Source of the DNA: Trichoplax adhaerens | Taxonomy: Eukaryota; Animalia; Placozoa | DNA length: 64,000 bases | Assembly: GCF_000150275.1 (NCBI RefSeq) | Contig: NW_002060948.1 | Span: 1,784,772 to 1,848,771 of the forward strand | Direction of reading: 5' to 3' | In this document: piece by piece, positions 5,351 through 51,990 of the stretch | Layout of the letters: each line of letters opens with the position of its first letter | Numbering within the stretch: the first letter of the stretch is position 1 | Position numbers and translations under genes: made by a program | Notes under the pieces: generated by a model | Database searches by the model: none | The model's input: the letters and a program-made list of their open reading frames with translations, nothing else | What the model was told of the DNA's origin: nothing

Positions 5351-5866
5351 TTACAGTAGCTCAAATAATATTTTCAGTAACGTTACAAAAATACGATGAA
5401 AGGTATCTGAAGCAGAGCCATGTTTATTCGAGTTATACTTTTCAGCTGCGGCATTAATGGCGTCATCTTTTTCTCCCATTACTACTGTTAATTGGTAAAC
5501 TGATTGTTCATATGACACATGACCATAAATTGCAACGCCAATAGGTCGCTTGGCACTTGAAGAGATGGTGATTATATCTCGTCCGCACGTATTGGAAACA
5601 TGAGAGTAGTGATCGAAGTCAGGCTTTTCGTTCCCTTCATCAGCGTATATATCAGCATCTCCGGATATGGAATCTAAGATTAGTGTATATGTTCCACCTT
5701 TTGTGATAGTATAGTAAGTATAATTACCTCGTCCTATAGCCCCGTCAAATACCTTGACATTGCCATTTGCGTCGACCGTCCTAACAATGGCCATAGAAAG
5801 GAAGAACATGGTCATAAAAGCCATTGCTAAGTTTGAACGGCAATTTTGACGAAAAGACCATGTCAT
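5351..5866 (-). CDS. C6orf120: UPF0669 / C6orf120-family protein, single coding exon
   Basis: Signal-peptide-like N-terminus, motifs GNYTYY, L.S..GDADIY, TCGRD and RPIGVAIYGH, and C-terminal IFVTLLKILFELL typical of UPF0669. The first in-frame ATG is at 5866; the ORF track starts at a TTG at 5887. Confidence 0.88.
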   Translation of the reverse strand: MTWSFRQNCRSNLAMAFMTMFFLSMAIVRTVDANGNVKVFDGAIGRGNYTYYTITKGGTYTLILDSISGDADIYADEGNEKPDFDHYSHVSNTCGRDIITISSSAKRPIGVAIYGHVSYEQSVYQLTVVMGEKDDAINAAAEKYNSNKHGSASDTFHRIFVTLLKILFELL

Positions 5867-6480
5867 GATGAATGATGTTATGCTCAATTTGACTTGTGTT
5901 TCAATATAAGAATTCTATTCGAATACAATCACTTTCGGCCAAGATCAAGTCTTTAATTGCATACACGATGTCAATAAGTCTATTGTTGTACTTGTCTTGG
6001 CACTAAGAAAAAATCTCTTCCATTCCAAGTTGATTGTATTTCCTGACTAAAAAAATGGAGGCCAATGTCCAGTTCTTAATAAATCACTCTTATTCTAACA
6101 TACATCTACGCATCTAGAATAAGCAAGAATTGCAATTCTATTGACCTTGATACTATATGATATCAATTATCTTTCTTTCCTTGATAACTGACGACACCAA
6201 TTTTAATCATCAAAATCCAGTGCACTACTTGCATGCATGTAGGAGAAAATGGCCACCTTTACGCGTCTCTTTCAAAATGGATGCTGATCATCGATGCGTA
6301 TAGTATGTATTGGATAACTGATCACCAAATCCACAATATCCTAATTGATTGTCTGATGTACTCGATCCGATTGCTTAAATAGTAAACTAAAACCTTCAAT
6401 ATAAATCTAGTCAACAAATGGATTGCTCGAAGTTAACGAGAATTTTGAAGGGCCGAATTTGAGGAAGGCGCAGCTTTGAG

Positions 6481-8198: not shown

Positions 8199-9275
8199 TT
8201 AGCTATCTGTATGCTTTTGTTGATGCTTACTTAAGTTTCTCTTAACGCGAAAAGATAAATCACAGTCACTGCATTTATACGGTTTTTCATTTGTATGCAA
8301 ACGAATATGCTGTCTTAAATTAGAGAGTACAGAAAATGCTTTAGCACAATATTCACAAATGTACGGCTTTTCTCCCGTATGAGTTCTAGTGTGTACTTTC
8401 AAGCTTTGCCTTGTTGTAAACGCCTTGGTACAATCGTGGCATTCAAACAGATTCTTCTTTTTGTGTATATCTTTAGCGTGTAATAAAAGTTGAGGTTTAG
8501 CATCGAAGGTTTTTTTACAAATTGTGCATTCGAAAACGTTCAGATTATGAGTTTTAGCGTGCATAGTTAGATTGCGGCTTGCATCATATTTCGTTTTGTA
8601 AATGGTAAATTTTTGGACTCCACCGGTTTTTAGAACGTTCGATGCTGACTCATCACCAGCTATTTCGCCATTTAATGCAGCTGTCTCCTCTCTTTGCTCT
8701 GTTCCCTCTGTGGTACGATTGGGTATTTCCTCAGCGTTATCTGAATCTATATCCATTTCTTTCGCCAAAGATTGCGGAGCAACTTCGCCATCGTTTGTAC
8801 ACGATATTTCATCTTCATTCTCTTCCTCCTGGTAATTTGCAGTTGCAAACGCAGTAACGTGGGAAATAATAGTAGTGAGCAGCGTTGCTAATGCAATACA
8901 GGTTTGGCCATAATCGATTTCTTCGCTGTCTCCTAGTTCGCTGCCAATGCATTTCAACAACATCGTTGACCAATAGGTTAACTGTGATAAAACGATATGT
9001 CTGAAGGTAGGCATTTGACGATTAATCACAAACAGTTGTGCAGTAAGTTGTTCCGCAATATCATGTAAGACCTGTTGTAAATGCTGAACATTTTGTAAGG
9101 TCTCCTTTCTAGATTGGCTATGTATTGAATCAGTATTAGATCGTGAAGCTACTGCCACTTTTTCCGTCACTTTTTCCAAAGTTTCTACCAACTTGTAACA
9201 AGATAGACCTAAAACTTCTGCTGTGGTATCATCTCTTGTTAGAGTCGATTTTAGATCGCATAGTTTGGTCGATAG
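8199..9275 (-). CDS. C2H2 zinc-finger protein, terminal exon (4 intact fingers plus 1 degenerate; upstream exons unresolved)
   Basis: Fingers CTIC..HAKDIH, CHDC..HTRTH, TGEKP-YICEYC..HIRLH and TNEKP-YKCSDC..HQQKH. The acceptor tttttatacag at 9276 extends the ORF in frame (LSTKLCDLK...). Confidence 0.88.
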   Translation of the reverse strand, partial: LSTKLCDLKSTLTRDDTTAEVLGLSCYKLVETLEKVTEKVAVASRSNTDSIHSQSRKETLQNVQHLQQVLHDIAEQLTAQLFVINRQMPTFRHIVLSQLTYWSTMLLKCIGSELGDSEEIDYGQTCIALATLLTTIISHVTAFATANYQEEENEDEISCTNDGEVAPQSLAKEMDIDSDNAEEIPNRTTEGTEQREETAALNGEIAGDESASNVLKTGGVQKFTIYKTKYDASRNLTMHAKTHNLNVFECTICKKTFDAKPQLLLHAKDIHKKKNLFECHDCTKAFTTRQSLKVHTRTHTGEKPYICEYCAKAFSVLSNLRQHIRLHTNEKPYKCSDCDLSFRVKRNLSKHQQKHTDS

Positions 9276-34293: not shown

Positions 34294-37200
34294 TTAAGTA
34301 TAATTTGTTAATCGTTCGTATATATGGTCATCTTGCTCGTTACGTTGATTAACTGTTGCTTGGTGAGTTTGAGAATTGCGTCGGCTATTAGATGGTCGGT
34401 AATACAGGGAATCATAAACATGTACCGATGAATCATCCGTTTGATCAAAGTTCGGATTAATATAAGCACCTGAAGAATCTTCCTTTAGTTCAAACTCCAT
34501 AATAGAATCTACATCCCCTTCCTCAGAACTAACCGATATTCGGAATTCGTTGGATCTTGTAGTAGCGTTTGAGACTGTATTATCATCTTCATCTGAATCG
34601 GATTCAAGGTGTTGATATTCACCATGAAGTGAAAAAATTGGATTACGATAAGGTTGAATCTTTTCCCGATCATGATTAACTCTACGTTTACGAAAGAGTA
34701 AGCTTTTAAACGTCATTTTTCGTCTTCTGTGGACACAAGTATAATAGGTTGCTAGTAACGCAATGAGTATACTCCCACCCAGTCCAAAGATAATGAAAAG
34801 CATGATGGAATGGGATTCTATTTCCAGAAAGCGGAAGGAAATAGTGTAAATTACTATTCTTAAGTACTGAAGCTATTTAGAATTTGATCATACTATTACC
34901 TCCTTTCTCTTATATGAAATTTACTAGGTTAATGTATAGAAATAAAATAATTTTAAAGTTTACTACATGCATGCTACTACAGTAAATTAAGTTAGTGCTT
35001 ATTTTACTTTCAAATCATTTTTCTCCTAGGATAACGACATGCGATGATTTTGTCAATGTTGAAATATTTTCGTTAACGTACCTTGGCCAGTGTGTTTTAG
35101 CGTACCAATAGATGATAGGCTCAATGACTTAGATGCAGAAGTGGAAAATAAACCTGTTTGAAGAATTTTAACATTATTATAAATGTTACTAAGAAATAAA
35201 TGTAATTAAAATAGTTAGAACTATCACGGTACAAACGGTAAACATCGTCTACCTTTAACTTTAAATGAATAGGTTGCATAATGAACGAAATATTACGGCT
35301 ATATCTTAACGAAGAAACCGTTTCTCTCAATATCATAGACAAGCTACTACATAATATTAATGAAAAGATTTTCTAAATTTATCTGTATCTAAACTTTAAA
35401 ATATTAATTAAGGATGATTATATTTTTATTTTAGTGTTAAATAGATCTAGTTATATAAGCTAATCTTTCTCTCTTTTTATTTAGTTACCATATTTAACAC
35501 GTATTGCAAGATAACGTTTACTAAATTATTCTAATTTCTATAAATACAGCATTTTAGATACGTGTATATTCTCTTTAATTTTCTTGTGCCTTCTTTTGAC
35601 TATAACAAACGTAAATAATATTTGCCTCATTCTAATTTTATATAGATGCGCTACAGTACAGTAGATATATTACTTACAGTATTTGCATACGCTAGTTTGA
35701 TTATAAATATTGCAATATGAAGGTCAAATTACATTCTAATATTAAATGCCGCTACTAAATCATTTATCCAAATTCTCTACGTCTACATGTAATTGTAAAA
35801 TAATAAGTATGCTCATTTTATTATGAAAGATTGATCAAGATATACTTGCCATACTGTAATTTTCAGTAACGTAATTAGGTATTCGTCTCATATCTCTACA
35901 TAAGTTTAATTGTATCTTATGCCAGGACATGTTTATCCGTTCTATGTATTACTAGATATTTTATGGCAATTTTTGTTTATGTAATTGCATCTTTGCAGAA
36001 CTTAGTAGCACTCAGAACTATAAAATAATTTCTATAGAAACTAACCTTGCTGGCATAATTCTCCAATGTATCCATCGCGACATTGGCAAGTATAGTTACT
36101 TTTACCCTCTAAGCAAGTTCCACCGTTGCTACACGGATTTGGATCACATCTTTTTATTGCTGTTAAAAATGAAAACAGTTTAACAAATGTAAGATTCAAT
36201 TTGTAGCTAGTGATTCCAACAGTTCACAAGAAGAATTTAATTGGTATATGAATACAAAAAAAACAAATATGTAATCTCATACCTCTTTGACATAACAGCC
36301 CCGTATAACCGGGATCGCAGTTACATTTATATCCATCTGTAAGGCTAATGCAAGTACCATAATCACCACATGCCAATGAAGGAATCAGCATGGTGCCATT
36401 AGATGTAGAACAATAATCAATTCCTATATTTCAAGTACGAAACAACAGAAATAAAAGTTAGCTATTAAGCTTGGCAATTAATAAATTGATCGTTAAAAAC
36501 AAATGGATATGGAATAGTTAAAAAGGACTAACTTTGTTCACAAAATCGGCTAGTAAATTCTTCTGTACATTTGCAGATATAACCGTTAAACTCATCTATA
36601 CAACTAGCACCATTTTGGCATTGATTTGCAAGACACTCGTCAACTTCAAGGCTGCAATCATTTGTTGTCCAGCCAGGTGGGCAATGGCATGTATAACCAT
36701 TAATTTCATCACGGCATGTAGCATTATTAAAGCATGGCATTGAAGAACATTCGTTCATATTAATTTGGCAATGAACACCAGTATAACCCAATCGACATGA
36801 ACACTGATATTGGTTGATTAAGTTATGACAAGTTGCACCATGTTGGCAAGGTTGATTGGCTACTTGGCATTCATCAATATCAGTTTGACAATGGCTTCCA
36901 GTAAATCCAGGCCTAAATATGATTTAATTAATTATACAATGCAGTATTATCCATTATAAACAAGTTTTATTGGAAATGGGCTTCAATTTTTTGGTACGAT
37001 CTACAACTTTCTCAGTAATTTAATGCCATCCATTACAAATTTACATAATTTAGCACACTGTTAAGTCTGACTAAATCTATTCTCATTGCAATATGTATCC
37101 TATGCAATATTATGTGCTATACGGCAATGTTAAATAATACATAAGTTGTTCCTATTTTGTGGTCTAATTTACCTGCATTGGCAATGATAACCATTAATGG

Positions 37201-40200
37201 AATCATTACATGTGGCATAATTGAGACATGGGTTGGATTGACATTCGTTGATTTCCAACTGGCAACGAATACCGTGGTAGCCAGATTGGCAATGGCATTG
37301 ATAGCCATCAACTAAATCAGTGCAATTACCGTTATGAAGACAAGGTTGACTAAGGCATTGATTAATGTTGGTCTCGCAATGGAGACCAGTAAAATCTTGA
37401 TGGCATAAGCAATGGTAACTGTCAACATTGTCCATACATGTGCCTTGATTTAAGCAAGGTTGGCTGTGACATTCATTGATATTAATTTCGCAGTGTCGAC
37501 CAGTAAAGCCAGATTGACATTGGCAAGAATAATTTGCTTGCAAATCGTGGCATTTGCCACCATTTAAGCAATAATTATCTTCATGAAGACATTCATTAAT
37601 ATCATTTTGGCATTGATTACCAACATAACCAGGTTGGCATTGGCATTGATAGCCGTTAATTAAATCGACGCATTGGCCACCATGTTGACATGGTAAAGAT
37701 GCACATTCGTTAATATTAACTTGACAGTTTCGATCGATAAAACCACGCTGGCAACGACAAATATATTGGCGGATTAAATCTTCACATTGGCCGTGAACAC
37801 AAGGTGAACTTAAGCATTCATTAATTTCATTTTGACAGCGTTGACCTTGATAACCAGTTCCATTACAATCACATCGATATTGATTAATGCCTTGATAGCA
37901 TAATCCACGATGTAAACATGGTGAACTTTGGCATTCATCAATATCATGTTGGCATTGCTTACCATCGTAACCTAATGGACACTGGCAGCTATAATCAGCT
38001 AATAAATCTTGGCAATGGCCACCATTTTGGCAAGGTCGGCTTTGGCATTCATCTATTTCAACATGGCAATTTCTACCGGTATAACCAGGTCGGCAATGGC
38101 ACTGATAGGAATGAATGCCATCAATGCAAATACCTCCATTTTGACATGGTTTGCTATGACATTCGTTAATGTTGATTTGGCAGTCAGATCCATTATAACC
38201 AGGCTGGCATTGGCAATGGTATCCTTGAGCAAGATCACTACATATACCACTGTGTTGGCATGGTGCATCAGCACAACTATCGATACAAGATTTGCCTTTA
38301 ATACCCCTAGGGCAATCGCATTGATAATCATCTACTAAATCGCTACATTTTGCATTAGAATGGCATGGATTAGGTGTACAATCGTCAATATTAATTTGGC
38401 AATTTTTGCCTGTATAACCTGCTTGGCATATGCATTGATATTGATTCAATAAATTTAAGCAAGTACCATTATGATGGCAGGTATGATATTGACATTCATC
38501 AATATCACTTTGGCAGTGGATACCTGTATAGCCAGGTTTGCATAAGCATCGATATTGATTGATTTGATCGATACATTGGCTATTATGGAGACATGGAGAG
38601 CTAGCGCATTCATCGATATTAATTTGACAATTTTGACCCATAAATCCAGCTGGACATTGGCATTGATATTGATTCACTAAATCTCGACATTGACCACCAT
38701 GATAACATGGTACTGATTGGCATTCATTGATATCACTTTGGCAACTATTACCTGTAAATCCTGGCCTACAATAGCATTGATAGCCATTTAACTGATCTTG
38801 GCATGTGCCATTATTTAAGCATGGTGAACTTGCACATTCATTAATTTCAGTTTGGCATGATTTACCCGTATAACCTGATTGGCATGAGCAATGATAATCA
38901 TTTACTAAATCACTGCAATTGCCATGAATGCATGGCGCTGAAAAACATTCATCGTGATTGATTTGGCAATTGAATCCGCCATAACCTGGTTGGCATGAGC
39001 ATCGATATGAATTCGCTAAATCATGGCACGTTGCTCCATGTTGACAAGGCTGAGAGCCGCACTCATTAATATCCAGCTCACATTTTTTACCTGTATAACC
39101 TTTTGCACATGCACATTGATAAAAGTTGAATTGATTGATGCAGATTGCATTATTTTGGCATGGATTACTGGTACATTCGTTGATATCTATATTACAACTT
39201 CGACCTTTTACTCCATCTGGACAATTGCAAGTGAAGTTATTAATTTCATCCTATGTATGGATAAAGATAAGAAATTTTATTAAGTTTGAGTCTTTCGGTT
39301 TATTTAAGGTGATCGCTTTCTTGTAGGTAGAGTAAGGCGCTCAAAGTATATCTTTATAACTGATTCAACTTCTACATTTAATCAGATGTAGGTTCATTTT
39401 TAACGACATTTTTTATCTGTTTGAGCAATAGTTTAAATGGTCTCAACTTTTAATAATCTAGTAACTATAGTTTTATGTAACAAGATATAGTTTTATAACG
39501 GTATTTTTGATCTGTTTAAGCTATAGTTCAATTAAATGATCTCACTTTTCAGCAATCTAGTAATAATGATTTTATGTTATAAGATATAGTTATATAGTTA
39601 TAGTTCTATTTTTGGCAGTATTTTTGATCTGTTTAAGTTATTGTTTACATGAATTCATTCTTCAGTAATCTAGTAATGATAATTTTATATAAAAGAGATT
39701 ATATACCTTACAAGTGCCATTATGATAGCAAGGATTAGGGGAGCAATCGTCGATATCTGTATTATTTTTTCAAATTGTGTTCAATATGAATTAATTAGAA
39801 ACTCTAGAAAATCCATACGGTATGTATAGTCATACGTGATATTTAAGTTAGTAAAAATTTGACTCTGTAATATGTTGAATTTATTACAATCTTACTTGTT
39901 TCACAATAATATCCAGTAAATCCTTGCAGGCATTGGCAACGATAATCATCCAGCAAATCGATACATTTTGCATTATTCTTGCATCGATGCTTAAGGCAAT
40001 CGTTAATATCTTAGGTTATAGGGAAGAAAAAATGAGTAAGATTCGTTTTTATAAATGATATAAAGTGGTAATAGACAATCATGGCGTATCCCTGACTAAC
40101 GGAAACTGTTGTAAATCTCTTAATCTATATACTTACTTTTCTGGCAGTGATCACCTTGAAACCCACTTCCCGTACAGTTACACGTATAACCATTAATGCC

Positions 40201-43200
40201 ATCAACACAATTTCCACCATTTAAGCAAGGAAATGATTGACATTCGTTTATGTTAATATGGCAATAAGTGTCATGAAATCCTGGCATGCAACTACATTGA
40301 TAACCATGATTACCATCAACACATGTAGCATTATTCATACAAGGTTGGCTAGAACATTCATCAATATTAACTTGACAATGATGACCAGTAAATCCTGCAG
40401 GACAGTAACATTGATAGCTGTCGACTCCATCAATACAGGTGGCAGAATTTTGGCAAGGTGATGATTGACAGTTATTGATATTAGTCTCACAATGGATACC
40501 TGTAAATCCTCTCTTACAAGTGCAAGAATAAGACCCCATAGTATCGTGGCACTTTCCTTGATGATGACAGGTAGTTGGTGTACAATCGATAATGTCTAAA
40601 TAATTTTTAGTAGATTAGTTAGTGTATAGCTTAGAAACACCAGCTATGGATAATGTAGAATAGATAATAACTTCAACGAAATATAATAGACATTGTCACC
40701 ATTATATCCTTCACATACAAAATGATTTTACCTTCTTCGCAGTGGCTACCAGTAATTCCTACGGGACAATTGCAAGAGTAGCTACCAAATCGATTAATGC
40801 AAGTACCATTATGCATGCATGGATGTCGTAAACATTCATTAATATCTGAACGATAGTGCAGGATAATATTTTTAAGGCATGCTGAATTTTTCGTTTATTT
40901 ATTGTAAATATTATTCTTACCTCCTCGACATCTTGATCCTGTTAATCCTTTTGGACATTGGCACTTATATGTATTCACTTGAGTATTGGTACATTTAGCA
41001 TTATTTTCGCATGGAAAACTACGACATGGATTCATATCTAGAGTATAACAAATGGGAGGAAAATATAACTAACAGCATATAATGCTACTTACTGCCAAAT
41101 AAATAGTTACTGTAACAACGTTATCCATGTATCTATTAATTAGTATTAACATATTACTATCAGCTGTAAGCTTATTAAAGATTTATATGTATACCTTTCA
41201 TGCTACGATTGTTATATTAAATATGATAGAATTAATGAATTTATAAAATTGACATAAAAATGTTAAAATTATTTGGCTGGTATTTGGTATAGAACTAGTA
41301 ATAATATCCTAATTATTCCTATAACCAATCATAGCATTTTCTCTTTAAAATAGAATCAGTATAGAATTTTAGGTTTTAATCCCATCTATAGGACAATATT
41401 TTAATATCAATTCGGGGAGGAGAGCATTCTATCATACAAACAATTTCAATCTTTATTAAGCGAAATCATATATAAAATTTCTTATTGAGTAGAGTTGATA
41501 TCTTACCGTCGCTACAAGTCTTTCCTGTCCAAGATACTGGACATATGCAATGAAAATCATTTATTCTATCAATACACGTGCCATTATTCCCACAAGGATT
41601 GGATACACATTCATTAATATCTAAAGTTAAAAGAAGACACTCGTAAATAATGCTGAATACACGTATGACGGCTCTACCCACGAGGATGAAAAAGTTTGTC
41701 ATGACATCGCTTATGAGAGAAGATTTAGCTATGGTACTTTACATTTGCATTATACTTAAATATGAGAATTACCATTCTGGCAACGTTGTCCTTCATATCC
41801 TTGAAGACACTGACATTTATAGAGATCTGGGCCATCATTTTGACAGCTTCCTTCATTAAAACATGGGCTTAAACGACATGAGTTCATATCTAATTTTAAT
41901 AGACAAGGGTAATTGCAATTTAAGTGCAATAAATTCAACATAAATAACGATATTAAACATCAACTAGTCGCTAAATAGTATTTCACATTTTATTGCATGT
42001 AGACATAAATTTAATTCATTTGCTACATAAATTATTATTGCTCAAGGTTTAGCCTACAGTTAATTTTTGCATTCTTGTTACCTTTTTCGCAGTTTTCTCC
42101 CGTCCAATTAGCAGAACATGTACATTGATACTGTTCAATACCGACATTTGTACAAGATCCCCCATTTTTGCAAGGCGAGCTACGGCAACTATTTAGATCT
42201 ATATATATATATATATACATTATCCAGGAGAGATTTCATACAAATTATTTCATAGATAAATAATTACTGACACGTGTAAACTTAAGCTTGCGATCAACTT
42301 CCAGTGAATGATTTATACAAGAGAAGACAATCAATTAGATTCATATTAAGACAATCACCTTGGTCGCAATGCTTTCCTGTCCAATCGGAAGGGCACAAGC
42401 ATTGGTAATTATTAATTTTATCGATACATTTTGCGTAGATATGCTTGCAAGGATTTGACTTACAATCATCAATATCGACTATAAAATGTAATATAGGAAA
42501 TTTTATCACGGTTAACCTGAAATTTACACTATTTATATCGACAGACTAGACACTGGATTAATTTGATACCACTTAGAGAAACTTACATGTCTCACAATAC
42601 GATCCGGTATGATTACTAGGACACTGGCACTTAAAACTATCAGGACCGGTATTATCACACTTTCCACCATTTCTGCATGGGCTACTTTGACAGGAATTTA
42701 GATCTATATTTAATTATTTACGTTTTAGATTCGATCGATGTACGAGTCTAAAATCGGTGTAGTATAATAATTGCGAAAATACCCTATATGTTTACGCTAA
42801 GTCATCTGATATGAAATTGCTTTTATCATGGTTAAATTGTGATGTAAGAATACATGAAATGCCTGTATTAAACAACGTTATTCAATATAAGAGCGAATAA
42901 ATGATCTCGTCCAAGAAGTACTAGAGTCTAAATCGGTATAGTATAACAATTATGAAAATATCTTGTATATTTAAAACTTTAGTAGAAGAAATATTTAAAC
43001 TCACCACTATCACAGTTAATTCCTGTCCATTGATAAGTGCAATTACAATAATATTTATCTGGACCAGTATTGTTACAACTACCGTGTTTACAAGGTGAAC
43101 TTCTACAAGAGTATAAATCTAAAGCATGATAGAATATCAGAGATATGTGAAATCATAAATGATAATAAATATATTGGCTTTAGCCATAATTTAGGCTAAT

Positions 43201-46200
43201 TTAGAAATTGTTAAACATTTGGTAGATTGCACTGTATGAATATTGGGAATAATTGATCTAAACTTTTAAAAACTATAAAATTGGCCTATCTTACCTGATT
43301 GGCATTGTTTGCCTGTCCAGCCTGAAGGACAGTGGCAAGTATAGGATTGTATACCATCTACACAAGTTGAATAAACATGCTTGCATGGATTCGGATAGCA
43401 ATCATCGATATCAACTGCAAATATAAATATCCATAATTGATGTGCTTAAGCTTTAAAGACGAGTACCGATTTCAATTTATCAAGGATATTATTAGTCTAA
43501 CTGAAAGATTAAATACCAACATGTTTCACAAGTAGATCCTGTGTAATTGGTTAAGCAATTACAAGAAAACTGATCTGGCCCAGTATTAAAGCAAGTTCCT
43601 TGATGTTTACATGGATTACTTCTGCAGGTATTTAGATCTATTAATAGATTAATCAAGTTATTTTCTGCCATTATTTGATTGTACATATAATACTAATGCT
43701 AATAATAATCCTTTTCAGCCATCTTTATATTTGTATATAGTCTACCTAATTATCAATTATTAAAATTGCTGATTCTCACTCTTATGCCTAAATGAGTGCT
43801 GATCGATGCAACACCAATTCTATCTATCGCCTATAGTTAAACTTGTTAAGCCAATTTATTATATGAGTAAAGCAAAACCAATAACTGCTGGCTTGATGCA
43901 AAGAAATACTATATTAATTTTTTATAATTATTATTCTGATTTAATGTTCTTTCATCTATAGTAGTCATAATTCTTTCCTGCCAATCAGTGATATATTGTA
44001 AGTTTAGGAAATAAACGTATGTCCTTCAATTGGGATATGTAAGATAGTTTATTGAGATCGTAAATTTTCATCGTATATTCTTTACTGATACTGTAATACA
44101 GTTATAGATTCCAATTCTTTGCAGGACATTATAACATCTTCTATCTATCAATCGGTGTAGTTGCTATCCAGCATTTGGTAGTTGTAATTTTCTGAAATAA
44201 TAACCTTGTTCGCAATGTTTTCCAGTCCAATCTGATGGACATAAACATTCATAACCATGAATTCTATCTAGGCATTTTGAACCCTGTCGATGACACGGAT
44301 TTGAAGCACATTCATTGATATCTGCAGATAAAATATTTTCTCAAGATTTTTCCTAATTAACACTAATAATTATCTAGCTCAAATAGTAATCAACCTAGAA
44401 TACCTGTCTGACAATGTTGGCCAGTAAAGCCAGCTCTACAAAGACACTTATACTGATTAGCCCCGTTATTATGGCAACTTCCGCCGTTATCGCAGGGTTC
44501 GTTTCTGCAAGCGTTGAGATCTAATTAAAGGAGAACCATCGCGTATAAGAATAACTCATAGTATTCTCTATCCAATTTATGATAAACAATAAGCTATCAC
44601 ATTTGTCGTAAACAAGTATTGCAGATTATTTATAAGCATATTGCATATCGGCCTGAATTTACGTCTCATGTAAAATTTCGAAATTGAAAATTATCTAAAA
44701 ATCTGTATACATTAACGTGCATAACATACTGGTTAATATCCGTAACAAAATAATCTTAAACTTATTGTAAACATAGCATCCATTTTGAGCTACAAGGTGC
44801 TTTCAGCTTTCAACCTTTACAGTCTTTATAAGTAAGAGTATATTAAAACATTTCTTAAAGTATAATAAATATAAAATCCTATTACAAGACATTTGATATC
44901 CTTTAATTCTTTTGTCTACACCCAGGTTCGATTTTGTAGAATTTAATACTCTAACATAGTCAACTTTCCCACTGGATATGGATAGAGTAAACTGCTCACA
45001 TTATCATTATATTTTTTTAAATTTAAAAATTAAAATCTGATTGCTATACATTCAATTTGAGCTACTTATTACCATTATGGCAATGTACGCCGGTGTAATT
45101 GGTAGCGCAAACACAACGATATCCATTAATATCATCGACGCAAGTAGAAAATCTGGAACATGGACCGGATGCACATTCATCAATTTCTGTCAATAATTAC
45201 AAATTATCTAATTAGCGCCATACTAATGCTTTATAGACAAATTGGCAATGAATGAATACGATTTAGACTTGTATGAAATTAATTAGGATGATGATTAAGC
45301 TCCTAAAATCTAAATTAATCAAGGATATGTAATTGTCCTTTAGTCATACTTATAGTACAATTCTTTCCAGTATAACCCGGTTGACATTGACAACTGTAGC
45401 TGTCTCGTCCAGTGTTAGAGCAGGTAGCACTGTGCTTGCATGGATTATGGCGACAAAAATTTAAATCTAAATACAGGTATATTGACTTTGTTAAATCTCA
45501 TAACAGAATTATTCCATTAATATTGACCGGATACTAGTAAATCATGATAGATTTTAAAGATAGCATAGGTGAAATTGAATATTGATGTAATTGAAATTGC
45601 ATTTATAAATTCGATTTATATCTCCATGTTTTTATACAATGTGAATTTACCATGTTGGCATAAGTTCCCTGTTCTATCGTTAGGGCATAGGCAGCGAAAA
45701 TGATTAACATTGTCTTGACACGTAGCGTAAGAAGGACATGGGCTTGAGGCACATTCATTAATATCTTCATTTATTAATTTAATAATAGTCATAAAGATTG
45801 CGTCAGATTATGAGCATTCTCTTCAATTAAACATAACTATTATCTAGTGCAGCAGAAATTTACCATATTGGATATGCTATAGTACCAATAAGATTTAAAC
45901 GCTGACAGGAAAATTTCGTTTAAATATCAATGACAAAGCCAAGTGTAACTTACTTATGGAACAGTCTGAACCATTATGTCCAGGAAGGCAATTACATCGA
46001 AATTGATTGATACCAATGTTGAAGCAAGTTCCACCATTGCGACAAGGTAAACTTCGGCAGGAATTTAAATCTATCGACATTTAAAATAAATTAGGCAGGA
46101 TATTATTGTTACAGAAACTTTCATTAAAATAGATCGATATTATAGATGCATGCACAACGACATTTTTAGTTTAGAATAAGTGCAACATGCTATTTCTAGA

Positions 46201-49200
46201 ATTACTTTAATTTTGTGTTAATTAAACATCATAGGCAATTATATTTGAATTTTTATGAGTAGAATAAGATTTCTAAAATAAAATCTGAAATAATTTGCAT
46301 TTCTAACTAGGAATAATTGCATACCTTGCTCACAGTGTCGACCAGTAAATGAATGGAAGCAAATACAAGTATATGCATCTGGTCCTGTATTGCGGCAAAA
46401 TCCTCCATTTTGACATGGTGATTTTCGGCAGATATGAAGATCTGTTTTCAAGAAATAGAAAAATTAAGTCTCGACTTACTTGAAAAGCGATTTATCCTGC
46501 TTATTATTCATTATTACTGTATAAGATCTGTTTCAAGATATAGAAAAATAAGCCTAAAATTGATCTGATAATAATTGATTTTACATATTTTGCGTGCTGT
46601 TATACATATTGCTCGTTGTTACTGTTTTTTCAAAATGATACCCATTAGTTTTTACTTTAGCCGCTGTTGAAATAACTTTTAAATATATTAGACGAATCGT
46701 GTCTTAATCCATATGCTACTATAGCTGTAAACTTGATATCATTCATATCAAAAATAGGTAAAATGACGGATGTAATAGTAGAAATGCGAAAATTGATCTG
46801 AATGTGCAGTTATAGGAAAGAAATAATTCAACAAATATGGAAGCAACCTTTTTCACATCGAATTCCAGTCCAATCATTAGGACATTGGCATGTATAACCA
46901 TTAATACCATCAATACAGGTTCCGCCAGAGAGACAAGGGCTAGATAAGCACTCATTAACATCTATATAGTGACATAAGTTCGTTATATTTAGAAAATATC
47001 CCAAAAAGCAGGAATGATATTGCTTATTAATAACTACATAAATATTCGATTTTGGCACTGCTACAACTTAAATACATTTTCAATAATCGAATATCCGTAA
47101 GTAACAAACATATTTATTCTAGATAGAGTAAATCTTTCAAATATAAAATAATAATACTGCATATTCGAATAGTGTGTATGGAACAGCAAAATATCAAGCT
47201 AAAAAAAAATGTATTTTGATATGATCATAAACGGATTTGATATAGCTTTTATGTATTTCTAGAGCTCCATCATGAACTATTTCAATGAGTACTATGGGAA
47301 AAAATACTTACTATTTTCGCAGTTTTTCCCCGTATATCCTGGAAGGCACGAACAAAAGTATTTATTTATACCTGTATTCATACAAGCAGCTCCATTTCGG
47401 CAAGGATTTGTTCGACACATCCTGTAATCTGTCAAGTAGATACAAGTTTATACGCAGGGATGGAATATAGTACTAGGGATGATGATGCAAAAATTTATTT
47501 CAAAAATACCATCTTGACATCTGCTGCCGCTATAACCATTAGCACATTGCATCTGGACCTTGATGCGAAAAATAGATTTGTAATTTATTGGTCGCTGACC
47601 GGTTAAGACAAATGTCTTGGTATGACCAGGTGAGACGTCAATATTATTATTAAATCTATCTAGGAGATCGTCTTGTCCATCAAAATAATCTTGATCATAG
47701 GCCGTGATATGAAGTCGAAATTTACCCTATCAGTAAATTCAATAACGTGAATAAAGTTTCTATTTGCATAGAGTAATCGAACGTTTAAAGCTATCATTCA
47801 ACGAAATTGTTATCATTTTATACCGTCCAAGGCTCGTGAATTGGAAAGATAATTGGGTTTTTACGGCCACTATCAGTTAATTTTACATCCGATGGAAAAT
47901 TGACATTTTCACTTCCATCAAACATAATGGTAGTAAAAGCTGCATATTGGCAGCCATATTGATTGGATTTACCGATACAAAAGTAAAAATAGTAATTACA
48001 AGCAGAGAATGTATCGCATTTCCCCCCAGTCCAATCTCTTTCGTGTTGATTGTAATACTTGAGCAAGTGGATTGTCACATAGCCACGAATTTCAGCTGAC
48101 CAGACGATCTTAATACATCCCTAGGATAACATAATTGAAAGAATGGGAGAATGAGATATGTAACTTGGATGATAACTGAAATATAGATTGCGAAGAGCCA
48201 ATGTTTCAGATAGAAAAATATTTATGCTGTACTAGCTTACATAATCATAGTGATGAAAAGTAAAAGAGAATAACACTCTAGTTAGCAAATAATGGGACAC
48301 GAGACTGATGCGTACGTATACATGATCCGACTAAAATCCAAATTAAATGCAAAAATATTAGAATTTGGGGCTTTAGTGGGCTATGCCAGTACTTTAAGTA
48401 TAATGTTAATTATACTAATAGATTTTATTGCTCTACGTAAATGTTTAATAATACGTAGTTTGGTTTTTTTTCTTTAGCAAATAGTCCTTCTTGAACTATA
48501 GGACTATGAGTACTCCTAATTCGAATTTTAGCGGTCTATTGTAAATAACAGCCGGGATTTGGGTTGCAGCTGTAACATATACAAGGTCTATAAAAGTAGC
48601 TACATGATTGAACAACTTTTAAATATTAAATTTTATTGGAGTTGTTTTGATAAATTAACAGCAACAGTCGTGTTTAGGGCCTAGCTGGATGTAAATATGC
48701 AGATACTTGTAGAAACATATTTGATATTTACGAAAAGCAAAACTGTACTAGATATACCGTACGACATTGCTAAATTATAAGGTAGTCTTCTTAAAATGTA
48801 TTGATTCCAGTATTTCTAAATTAGCAATAACTACAGATCAACATTAAAGATCGTAAGCTAATACATAAAGTAATTTAAATATGGCATGTTATACCGGAAC
48901 TATAATCCTCTTAAATGTCTTGATACTAGTATTACTGAATTAGCAACAGCTACAGATCAGTATTGAAGATCGTAAGCTAATATTTAAAGTGATTGATGAT
49001 CTGTTACATACCTTTTTGAGCTTGAATGTTTAATAGATAATCTATAATTGACAACGGTATTCGTACCTTACTCGTACAGCTGAACGTGTGCATTGCTAAT
49101 ACTAACATAAACTGAATATTTTTACTAGATACTCGTACATATGGTATATTTTATATAGTAATTTTATAAAAATTTATTCTGAAATAGCTTTAAATCAACA

Positions 49201-51990
49201 ATGCTGATTAGTAGGCTGTTGTATAAGACCTTGAATTTAGAGCTTATATTATCAACTAATATTATTTATGCGCTGGGCTATAATATTGGAATTTCATTAA
49301 AATTTTGACTATACTTTTAAATTGCATCAATTGTAAACTAGAATTAGTTTTATTAATAACTAATGTATTATATTGTGAAAATTATACAATCGTTACAACC
49401 ATCTACTGTCATAATGAGGATAGATGTAGGCGATACAATTTTGTGGTTACTTTAGTTTGATAGAAGTTACTTTTATTTATCCGCATGTAGTGGAATAATA
49501 ATTCTAAAATCTACCCTAATAAAATTTATTTTTCTATCCGCTAAGTATATGTTGTTGTTTTTTGGTTATAGTTAGCGCTTATAAAGGCCCTTTTGATTGA
49601 TCCTTTTAAGCTACCTCAATTTTCAGGATAGAAATGAAGTGTTGCCGTTAGTTCTTGTATAAAATAATTTATACTTACGGAGTTGCATTGTTATTGATAT
49701 AAATAATAAAATCAACATGAGCTTCCTACTAGGTTTACAGGAAAGTAATTCAATAAATATACAAGTACTGCTACAGCTAATAAATAAGTTGATACGGTGA
49801 AAAATCATGAAAGATCTTGATAAATGAATATGCATAGATGTTATAATTTATTCCGTTCTTTATGTAAGTTTAATTTGTAGGGATAGATCGAAGTGTGAAG
49901 GTCGAATGTCGATATATGAATTAATGTAAACTAAGTAAAAATTAACCATGTCCCACAATTGCAATCATCTGTTGCTAACATCTATGATAGACTTTTCTGA
50001 ACAAAGAATACAATGACATTTTATGAATTAATTAATGTACTTAGGGAGGACATAGTTCTTTTCGAAATTAATAATGTTTATATTTTTATACTATAAGGTA
50101 ATTGTATATGAAAAATCTTATAAAGCATATACACGTATATCAATATCAAACATACTTAGATTGGAGACTTTGAGTTAATTTTCATAAATACATACGTTAT
50201 AATTTCAAGTTATAACAACTATTAACAAGTGCCAATAATATTGTTACATAAAACTATATAGTACTGAAATCATGCTACGTAGCTCACAAGTTAACCGAAA
50301 ATGACATTTTCGGAAATTTAGTAATAAATATACATAAGTTACTCATCATGATGAAATTACTAAGCAAGAAATCTCCAAATATATTAACACAATATATCGA
50401 GTTATTCAGTTTAATCCTAGATATTGAATAAAGCATTTCCTATAATTGAGACAGATAGTAAAGGTGCTATTAATGCTATTTATAATAATTCCTACTTAGC
50501 AGTATAGAATACAAGTTGCCATTAAAATCAATCCCTTCTATTTTCGTTCTGTAATTAAATAGATGATCTCATCTAATCTCCTTGATATGCTAATAATTGA
50601 TCAATCAACTGTGAAGTGATTATGATGATCTACAAGTATTTCTATTTTGAAATACAACTAGGTCAATCATAGATTACATCTATTTGATTTATCATACGAA
50701 TGTAATTATAAATCTACACGTAATTTCTCAAGTTTGGTTCTTGTATAGTTAACTTGAGTCATGGCCAATTTCACATATTTTTTTTACCTTATTATTTAAG
50801 TAATCAATACTGGTCTTAATAAAGTACTAGGTAGATCTGTATTATCCAAGTCTTTATTGCCCTTAATATATAGTATAGCCCATATAGAAGATAAAGTAAT
50901 GGACGTGGCACGAAACTAGATGATTTATTTTAAGGTTAAATTTGACTGCATAAGTTGCATTAAGAGTGGTTGGATCATATATGCAAGTCTCTATCTTTCT
51001 CAAAAAATGCTAGAGTCAATACTGTAGTAGTTAATTTCTGTGGGTTAAATCAGACTTTATCATACATGATTTTAGACACTAAAAGAAATATAATAGGCAG
51101 GTAGAAATGCTTTGGTAGCAAAATTTCCCATTAAATTGGATCTTGATGAGACAGCATAGATGAAAGAAGTACCGATCTACTTGATGTTTAATTTCTCACT
51201 ATATTTCTAAAGATACTAGCTAACGAAGGTAAAATATTAAACAAGTGGGAATCGCGTAAGGATACATATTTCGGTTGAATTTAGTTTTGGTGGGATACAT
51301 TGGGTAAAATTTTAGTTTCGTGTGAATTTTCATTTCAATAGAAACTTTAATCAATACCGAAGACATGATAGACAAGCAGTAATATTGTAGTAATTGATTT
51401 TATCATATAATTAACAAGACCTAGATGATATTAGTCTTGATCAATTTCAAATATGTTTACTTCCTTAAAATATGTCCAAGGAATACTAGATGTAGGCAGA
51501 TACATATACGATATTACTGCAGTAGTTAACTTTCTTGCTAATCATGAAGTTTAGCTTGGCACATTAACAAACTAAACATATTCCCAAAATAGAACAACAA
51601 GGCAGATTGCATAGTAAACTAATGGATGGACGTAGTGCTTTCGTCAGTAAACGTAACTATCGCTAATAGTACTATCAACGCCGTATTTTGGCCATTGCTA
51701 TTTATGCTAATAAATTATCACTCATAAGATCACGCTAACCTTAAAAGTTATCGCACTTTGATCGTATGATCAAGGTTAGATATAATGATCCTTACTAATA
51801 CTACATATATATGTATAGTAGTTTACGATATTTGAAATAATTTAAAGTAGATATACAATAGACAGCAGCCTAACAGCAGCCTAACATAAGTTAATGACAG
51901 AAAAATGGTGTTCAAATTTTCAGTTTATGTATATATTTTACTTACTGAAAAGATTGTGATCCATATTAATAGTAACTTTAAGAACAGCAT
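34294..51990 (-). CDS. Delta/Jagged-related type I membrane protein: signal peptide, MNNL/C2 domain, truncated DSL, ~48 EGF repeats, TM, tyrosine-motif tail (~2250 aa)
   Basis: Exons: 51990-51946 ([15 protein letters not shown]); 48120-47824 and 47726-47510 (C2: [36 protein letters not shown]|[11 protein letters not shown]); 19 single-EGF phase-1 exons between 47428 and ~40732; a 4-EGF exon ~40596-40136; two small exons ~40009-39707; a large exon 39250-37173; 36912-~36533; 36423-36283; ~36159-36046; Ser-rich stalk 35153-35082; TM plus tail 34817-34294. All are GT-AG with consistent phases. Confidence 0.88.
39407..39700. repeat. Degenerate intronic tandem repeat, ~3 x 95-115 bp
   Basis: The block attttt.atctgttt.ag..at.gtt...ca.ttttcag.aatctagtaa...a.ttttat occurs three times. 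Confidence 0.75.
48776..48995. repeat. Degenerate tandem duplication, 2 x ~120 bp, in intron 1 of the ligand-like gene
   Basis: The block tcttaaa.tgt.ttgat...agtatt.ct.aattagcaa.a.ctacagatca..att.aagatcgtaagctaata..taaagt.att occurs twice. Confidence 0.8.

Follow-up and report, generated by a model that had tools for sequence, protein, structure and literature searches.

Notch Ligands of the Delta/Jagged Type and a Divergent Trichoplax Gene

The canonical ligands of Notch, represented here by Trichoplax adhaerens Delta (contig C1403), Drosophila Delta (7ALK) and DLL4 (4XL1), are type I membrane proteins in which an N-terminal C2 (MNNL) domain is followed by a DSL domain and tandem EGF repeats. 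The C2 platform (site 1) binds EGF12 of Notch and the DSL domain (site 2) binds EGF11, and C2 in addition binds liposomes; Arg203, a residue of the Notch-binding site of Jagged1, lies in the part of DSL that holds the third to sixth cysteines (C3-C6) (PMC5538765). A ligand-like gene of unusual design was found in a 64,000-nucleotide (nt) stretch of Trichoplax adhaerens DNA, the window, whose positions are used throughout unless a contig (C-number) is given. Lying on the minus strand from 51990 to 34294, it is predicted to encode a protein of 2,208 amino acids that shares with the canonical ligands the type I topology, a C2/MNNL domain in which their four cysteines and NP motif recur, the first loop of DSL, an EGF3-type repeat, the tandem EGFs, and a C-terminal half of C2 whose exon ends in phase 1. 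Unlike them, it is devoid of the C3-C6 part of DSL with its PRDD..GH face and of the atypical EGF1-2 (the DOS region). Delta proteins were reported to carry 7 EGFs on average (range 0-75) and Jagged proteins 14 (range 12-18) (PMC2770060, Gazave 2009); the window gene has 48.

Several related proteins also depart from the canonical order of domains. DLK1/2 and DNER are not known to carry a C2/MNNL domain, and DLL3 has only about 6 EGFs. DLL3 keeps MNNL, like the window gene, and provides a precedent for a ligand paralogue outside canonical signalling. Its DSL was described as absent or undetectable (PMC12166595), and DLL3 N-EGF1, used as a negative control, bound neither Notch nor liposomes (PMC5538765); in the window gene, by comparison, outright deletion has removed four of the six cysteines of DSL. 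Drosophila Aspr is found without DSL and without a transmembrane domain (PMC7299344). Compared with these DSL-less non-canonical ligands (DLK1/2, DNER and Aspr), the window gene keeps both C2 and a transmembrane helix.

In Trichoplax itself, an early survey listed Delta only, together with unexplained proteins carrying EGF and VWC domains (PMC2770060). A 2025 survey counted one Trichoplax Delta and no Jagged (PMC12166595), and the placozoan cell atlas of 2023 follows the single Delta (PMC10580291). Literature searches for MNNL proteins without DSL returned nothing comparable, and the family of about 15 genes to which the window gene belongs is not described in the papers found.

Gene Structure

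The window is AT-rich eukaryotic DNA. From about 48100 to 34297 its minus strand holds stop-to-stop frames with unbroken EGF-type cysteine patterns, which run into a hydrophobic segment and a tail. A model of 30 exons was assembled locally from 51990 to 34294, in which every donor is GT and every acceptor is AG; its coding sequence of 6,627 nt contains no internal stop. The domains follow in the order of signal peptide, two-exon C2/MNNL, a 10-residue loop with two cysteines, 48 EGFs, transmembrane helix, and a tail of 145 residues. The count of EGFs, which the earlier note had put at about 48, is exactly that in the model, and all 48 keep their six cysteines, accounting for 288 of the 296 in the protein. 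Domain and database tests were run exon by exon, and the spliced protein was used only for module counts. This is a real and intact T. adhaerens gene for a huge type I membrane protein, whose descent from a Delta/Jagged-type ligand is considered probable, though well short of certain.

Exon 1 (51946-51990), an inferred exon, opens the frame with its ATG, encodes residues 1-15 of the signal peptide and ends at a GTAAGT donor in phase 0; it was chosen as the sole upstream hydrophobic ATG exon with such a consensus donor in that phase. Exon 2 (47824-48120) completes the signal peptide and encodes the N-terminal half of C2/MNNL, in which four cysteines are conserved and the NP motif occurs. Exon 3 (47510-47726), flanked by introns of 97 nt and 81 nt, encodes the C-terminal half of C2 and, at its end, the single two-cysteine loop, a vestigial DSL loop of the form C-x3-Y-x-G-x2-C (47517-47546), after which the exon stops within two residues and one base. 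The loop is separated from the first EGF by the 81-nt GT-AG intron in phase 1 (47429-47509). At this 47510/47428 junction the DNA reads as the earlier note had it, with the last full codon of exon 3 plus one base, a GT donor, the 81-nt intron up to its AG acceptor and then exon 4.

Exon 4 (47312-47428) encodes EGF 1, a repeat of the Delta EGF3 type (DYRMC..PC.NG..C.NTG) that runs on to ...NTGINKY and is matched by Pfam EGF at E=2.4e-9. Exons 5-22 (40732-46961) are eighteen exons of 111-120 nt in phase 1 at both ends, each carrying one of EGF 2-19. Exons 23-29 (36046-40595), among them one of 2,078 nt (39250-37173), encode EGF 20-48, mostly calcium-binding repeats joined by 6-residue linkers. 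Exon 30 (34294-34817) begins with a stalk of 4 residues and then encodes the transmembrane helix (34806-34732) and the 145-residue cytoplasmic tail up to the stop codon. All of these exons lie on the minus strand.

The N-Terminal C2 Domain

Judged by profile evidence, the N-terminal domain is homologous to the C2 domain of Notch ligands. Alignment by hhalign of its N-terminal half with nine DSL-bearing ligands gave a probability of 98.5% and E=1.5e-15, and alignment of its C-terminal half and loop with the C-terminal half of C2 and first DSL loop of the same nine ligands gave 97.9% and E=4.4e-13. When a profile of 15 family members was compared with PDB, the only significant matches were Drosophila Delta 7ALK (E=2.7e-7) and rat DLL4 4XL1 and 4XLW (about 4e-4), all of them covering the N-terminal C2 region; with a profile of the C-terminal half including the loop, the Jagged and Delta matches were non-significant (E about 1-10).

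A profile of three paralogous N-half exons was searched against 1.84 billion representative proteins and returned 123 matches, which include an annelid Delta-like protein and a crinoid delta-like protein D, both with a complete DSL after the matched region. Exon 2 alone, run against a small database, matched the annelid protein at 2.8e-11, and by BLASTP it matched the paralogue L009 at E=4e-18; a homologous-protein search with this exon gave no candidate. When the genome was scanned in six frames for MNNL, three places matched, the window gene not among them; two of the three are just past the window on the same contig, and their exons can be aligned with those of the window gene. The Pfam family (PF07657) matches the paralogue L008 at 35.5 bits. 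In the profile and hhalign comparisons the N-terminus thus groups with the ligand C2 domains, as the earlier note had supposed.

Absence of the DSL Domain

Pfam DSL found no match on exon 3. Scanned in six frames for DSL, the genome yielded one strong match, at 71 bits, which is the canonical Delta of contig C1403, and no match within the window. No full DSL was anticipated at this locus, and none was seen by either scan. In profile-profile alignment, the loop C-x3-[YW]-x-G-x2-C falls on the first DSL loop between C1 and C2, known as the YYG loop (C..N.YG..C); this loop is the only part that aligns, and the part of DSL with C3-C6 and the PRDD..GH face is absent from the window gene. The intron behind the loop, being 81 nt long, leaves no room for a DSL exon. 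Furthermore, no atypical EGF1-2 (DOS region) and no module of the C-x3-C type occur among the 48 EGFs. The exon-wise scans bear out the architecture proposed at the outset, in which C2/MNNL is kept, DSL and EGF1-2 are gone, and ankyrin, LNR, laminin-G and VWC domains are missing.

The EGF Array, Membrane Helix and Cytoplasmic Tail

All 48 EGFs have the ordinary 4/5/8-9/1/8 spacing of cysteines, and their linkers are of 6 residues with few exceptions. The consensus for calcium binding is present in 31 of them, that for O-glucose in 30 and that for O-fucose in 24. In EGF 1-19 (40732-47428), encoded by separate 111-120-nt exons of phase 1/1, repeats of the Delta EGF3 type (DLN.C..PC.NGG.C.NTG) and of the calcium-binding type (DINEC) largely alternate, and skipping of single exons could leave the frame intact. 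EGF 1 aligns to EGF3 of Trichoplax Delta with a score of 106, and EGF3-like repeats are enriched in the first 18 EGFs. Farther along the array, one split EGF obtains its remainder from a 50-nt exon (39756-39707). At the junction of EGF33 and EGF34 (38270-38290), an odd linker of 3 residues, C-IDS-C, follows an ending of ...G.KGKSC and is conserved in the paralogue L023; this linker marks orthologous positions in the arrays.

Only 4 residues separate EGF48 from the membrane, where a hydrophobic 25-mer forms the predicted transmembrane helix and is followed by HRRRK. The tail contains two NPxF motifs (NPIF and NPNF), three YxxPhi motifs (YQHL, YDSL and YERL) and one acidic cluster. Pfam assigned only EGF-type families to the large exons and no family to the tail, and when the cytoplasmic tail was searched by tblastn in the 70 kb that follow, no paralogous tail came up. 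No VWC match exists within the window, and the last intron (1,228 nt) is without a cysteine-rich frame. The Notch receptor domains LNR, NOD/NODP and ankyrin had no Pfam match on the scanned ectodomain exons or the tail. Identification as a Notch receptor was rejected since the required domains are missing, Pfam having returned EGF families only, and a Crumbs-like or unrelated EGF protein was rejected since the domains are wrong or missing.

A Placozoan Family of C2-Plus-Loop Genes

The genome searched comprises 105.6 Mb in 1,414 contigs, and the N-half profile found 18 exon matches in it, corresponding to about 15 genes. They cluster on contig C1409 at 1.83-1.90 Mb and 4.27-4.38 Mb and occur also on C1411; three of them lie 30-70 kb past the window. 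In every locus with a readable next exon, the second C2 exon ends in C-x8-C-x2-G and an EGF exon comes next. An exon of the exon-3 type is present in 13 paralogues, and the same architecture recurs in 13 loci. A metagenome contig that resembles another placozoan by similarity and by its 31% guanine plus cytosine has the same exon end; in the non-placozoan contig L039 and in Trichoplax Delta, the C-terminal half of C2 and a full DSL are on one exon. A metagenome search for related loci with profile A3 gave no confirmed relative. In a tree of the C2 N-terminal halves, a comparison that the earlier note had proposed, the window gene belongs to a placozoan-only clade of 10 members with support of 86/97. 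The view of the gene as a repurposed family member is fair, and that of a lone oddity is not, since about 15 genes share the two-exon C2 and the C-x8-C loop.

The nearest relatives are two Jagged-like paralogues on the same contig, the L018 and L023 genes, which have the same C2-plus-loop cap and the same long EGF array, down to the odd 3-residue linker between EGF33 and EGF34. They refine the family placement that had first been made: both carry VWC-like cysteine-rich exons before the membrane, whereas the window gene has no VWC and passes after 4 residues into its transmembrane helix. The L018 gene (loci L018, L011 and L012; C1409:1863242-1878784, minus strand, 15-30 kb past the window end) contains C2 and the loop CCSQWTGSNC, after which come 38 or more EGFs, a VWC-like exon that at 20 bits is under the cut-off, and a second cysteine-rich exon. 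Its predicted sequence shows it to be closely related to the window gene, with a Jagged-like architecture lacking DSL. L020 (C1409:1888178-1895388, plus strand) is a C2-plus-loop gene in tandem with L023 (C1409:1901921-1920176, plus strand), which has more than 50 EGFs and a VWC-like match at 1920081-1920176; a run of N splits parts of this region. A VWC-like match was also observed at the 3' end of the 4.26-Mb gene on C1409.

A shorter relative is TRIADDRAFT_55383 (XP_002111403.1, UniProt B3RUR4), whose annotation names nothing but an FN3 domain and which the genome encodes at 99% identity. This protein of 574 amino acids has the same two-exon C2 and the loop CTEGWQDSKC, after which come an EGF1-like module, a mucin-like stretch and FN3; unlike the window gene, it has no giant EGF array.

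Some further members were noticed. L022 (C1409:4272588) and L021 (4308217) are near-identical, are separated by about 36 kb and probably stem from a recent segmental duplication, and L025 (C1409:4287006), located between them, shows replaced cysteines in its EGF exons and may be a decaying copy. L019 (C1165:1-1771, a contig of 1.8 kb) is a near-identical copy of the C2 exon of L018 and probably an unplaced haplotype fragment. P0075 and P0098, from metagenome or transcript contigs, encode about 420 amino acids in which MNNL is followed by no more than the first three cysteines of DSL and then by a stalk, transmembrane helix and tail; judging by these predicted products, C2 proteins with a truncated DSL exist beyond the T. 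adhaerens genome too. As for the surrounding DNA, the 10,146 bases past the window end (C1409:1848772-1858917) read as N, possibly an assembly gap, and two unrelated genes are located within the window on the minus strand, one at 5354-5887 and one at 8202-9191, of which one is UPF0669/C6orf120-like (Pfam 2.3e-25) and the other a C2H2 zinc-finger gene.

Origin of the Single Loop

The DSL exon of Trichoplax Delta ends two residues and one base after C6, in phase 1, and its EGF1 begins one residue before the first cysteine. Exon 3 of the window gene ends in the same manner, two residues after the second cysteine of the loop and in phase 1. In TRIADDRAFT_55383, where an EGF1-like module comes after the loop, the spacing equals that of the junction between DSL and EGF1 in Delta, the expected remnant of a deletion between two similar loops of DSL, C1-C2 and C5-C6. 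An EGF3-type exon stands right after the loop in the giant subfamily, so that EGF1-2 would also have been lost or displaced there.

Based on these junctions, a sequence of events is proposed in which the C2-plus-one-loop cap would have arisen when part of DSL was deleted in an ancestral ligand, probably a Jagged-like one, with EGF1-2 being lost subsequently in the giant subfamily. The earlier note had instead seen in the loop a fusion of the start of DSL with the end of EGF2. That is probably wrong, since the loop aligns on C1-C2 and its phase and spacing fit a deletion inside DSL; the two-step course, although unproven, is more economical and more likely than a single fusion.

Possible Function

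Site 2, the C3-C6 part of DSL that contacts EGF11 of Notch, is gone, so that canonical two-site engagement of Notch would not take place, and canonical activation of Notch by the window protein appears unlikely from its sequence. What might be expected instead is a rod of EGFs, stiffened by calcium and about 100 nm long if fully extended, that would hold a lipid-binding C2 tip out to neighbouring membranes. The protein would then serve as a tether in adhesion or recognition, or as an endocytic receptor, and not as an activating ligand. The NPxF and YxxPhi motifs of the tail are of endocytic type and count in favour of this proposal. Such a C2-tipped, calcium-stiffened tether or endocytic receptor is the favoured role, with about an even chance of being the right one.

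Several points speak against this account of descent and function. The gene model was predicted from genomic DNA, with exon 1 and the 3' exon placed by inference. Pfam MNNL (PF07657), which the earlier note had expected to match the spliced protein, was run on exons 2 and 3 singly and matched neither, and for this reason C2 was assigned by profiles. No alignment was obtained by BLASTP between the N-terminal half of the window C2 and the C2 of Trichoplax Delta, and the C-half profile without the loop matched no solved ligand in PDB. The C2 N-half tree does not resolve its deep nodes and does not decide between an affinity to Delta and one to Jagged; descent from Jagged and not Delta, and loss of DSL as opposed to its ancestral absence, are accordingly not proven. 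Finally, the O-glucose and O-fucose consensus sites resemble those of the Notch receptor, and a role in the Notch pathway could be indicated instead.

Alternative Explanations

The missing DSL might be an artefact, either of a DSL exon lost by misassembly or a mis-spliced model, or of a pseudogene in decay, as the decayed look of the paralogue L025 would allow. Such an explanation is very improbable when set against the same architecture in 13 independent loci and in the contig resembling another placozoan, the canonical ends of the 81-nt intron, an open frame of 6.6 kb in which 48 of 48 EGFs keep all 288 of their cysteines, and the absence of any DSL-like frame in the window; misassembly in particular is excluded because the C2-plus-loop architecture recurs across the 13 loci. 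Nor does it seem at all likely that the one-loop state is ancestral, a pre-DSL ligand having been preserved and DSL having arisen later by expansion of the loop. The loop does form a self-contained C-x8-C unit at the C1-C2 position of DSL, and the poor resolution of the deep nodes of the C2 tree suits this idea too. However, Trichoplax possesses a canonical Delta whose DSL is complete, ligands with DSL occur in sponges (PMC2770060), the placozoan-only clade supported at 86/97 makes up the core of the family, and the junction between loop and EGF1 in TRIADDRAFT_55383 shares both spacing and phase with that between DSL and EGF1 in Delta, as a deletion within DSL predicts.

A role within the Notch pathway is the more serious rival to the tether or endocytic receptor and is retained, although it seems rather unlikely. 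The protein might be a non-canonical ligand or modulator that acts through site 1 of C2 or through contacts between EGFs, or its glycosylated EGF array might bind Delta, and it would then activate weakly, inhibit in cis or serve as a decoy, like DLL3, DLK1 and DNER. The main support is the density of consensus sites for O-glucose (30 of 48 EGFs) and O-fucose (24 of 48). The four C2 cysteines are conserved, repeats like EGF3 of Trichoplax Delta are enriched at the start of the array, and ligands that tune Notch without DSL are known (PMC7299344); moreover, site 1, the disulfide-stabilised loop that joins strand 2 to strand 3, touches EGF12 of Notch independently of DSL (PMC5538765). In the same study, however, the Notch-dependent stimulation of liposome binding by Jagged1 disappeared with an antibody against DSL or when Notch binding was lost, and DLL3 N-EGF1 failed to bind Notch or liposomes. 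Furthermore, family members differ in the length and sequence of the strand 2-3 loop, which speaks against a single conserved partner, and about 15 paralogues seem excessive for one Notch gene.

Significance for the Placozoan Ligand Repertoire

Pfam MNNL misses most members of the family, so that domain censuses undercount them. The Trichoplax proteins with EGF and VWC domains of Gazave et al. may be the 3' parts of C2-plus-loop genes. The window gene and its roughly 14 relatives represent a ligand C2 domain reused many times without DSL, in some cases together with a Jagged-like VWC region, and the family bears on the timing of the Jagged-type architecture. It constitutes a natural experiment in which membrane recognition by C2 is separated from receptor binding by DSL.

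A bolder and quite doubtful interpretation of the predicted proteins is that the C2-plus-one-loop cap may be a self-sufficient recognition module mounted on varied stalks, including giant EGF rods, Jagged-like stalks with VWC and mucin/FN3 stalks, and that these proteins may form a second, DSL-independent class of partners at the cell surface. If this is true, such proteins would span more than 100 nm to reach membranes, or would reach the single Notch by the contact of C2 with EGF12 alone, and the Jagged-type architecture would predate the cnidarian-bilaterian ancestor.

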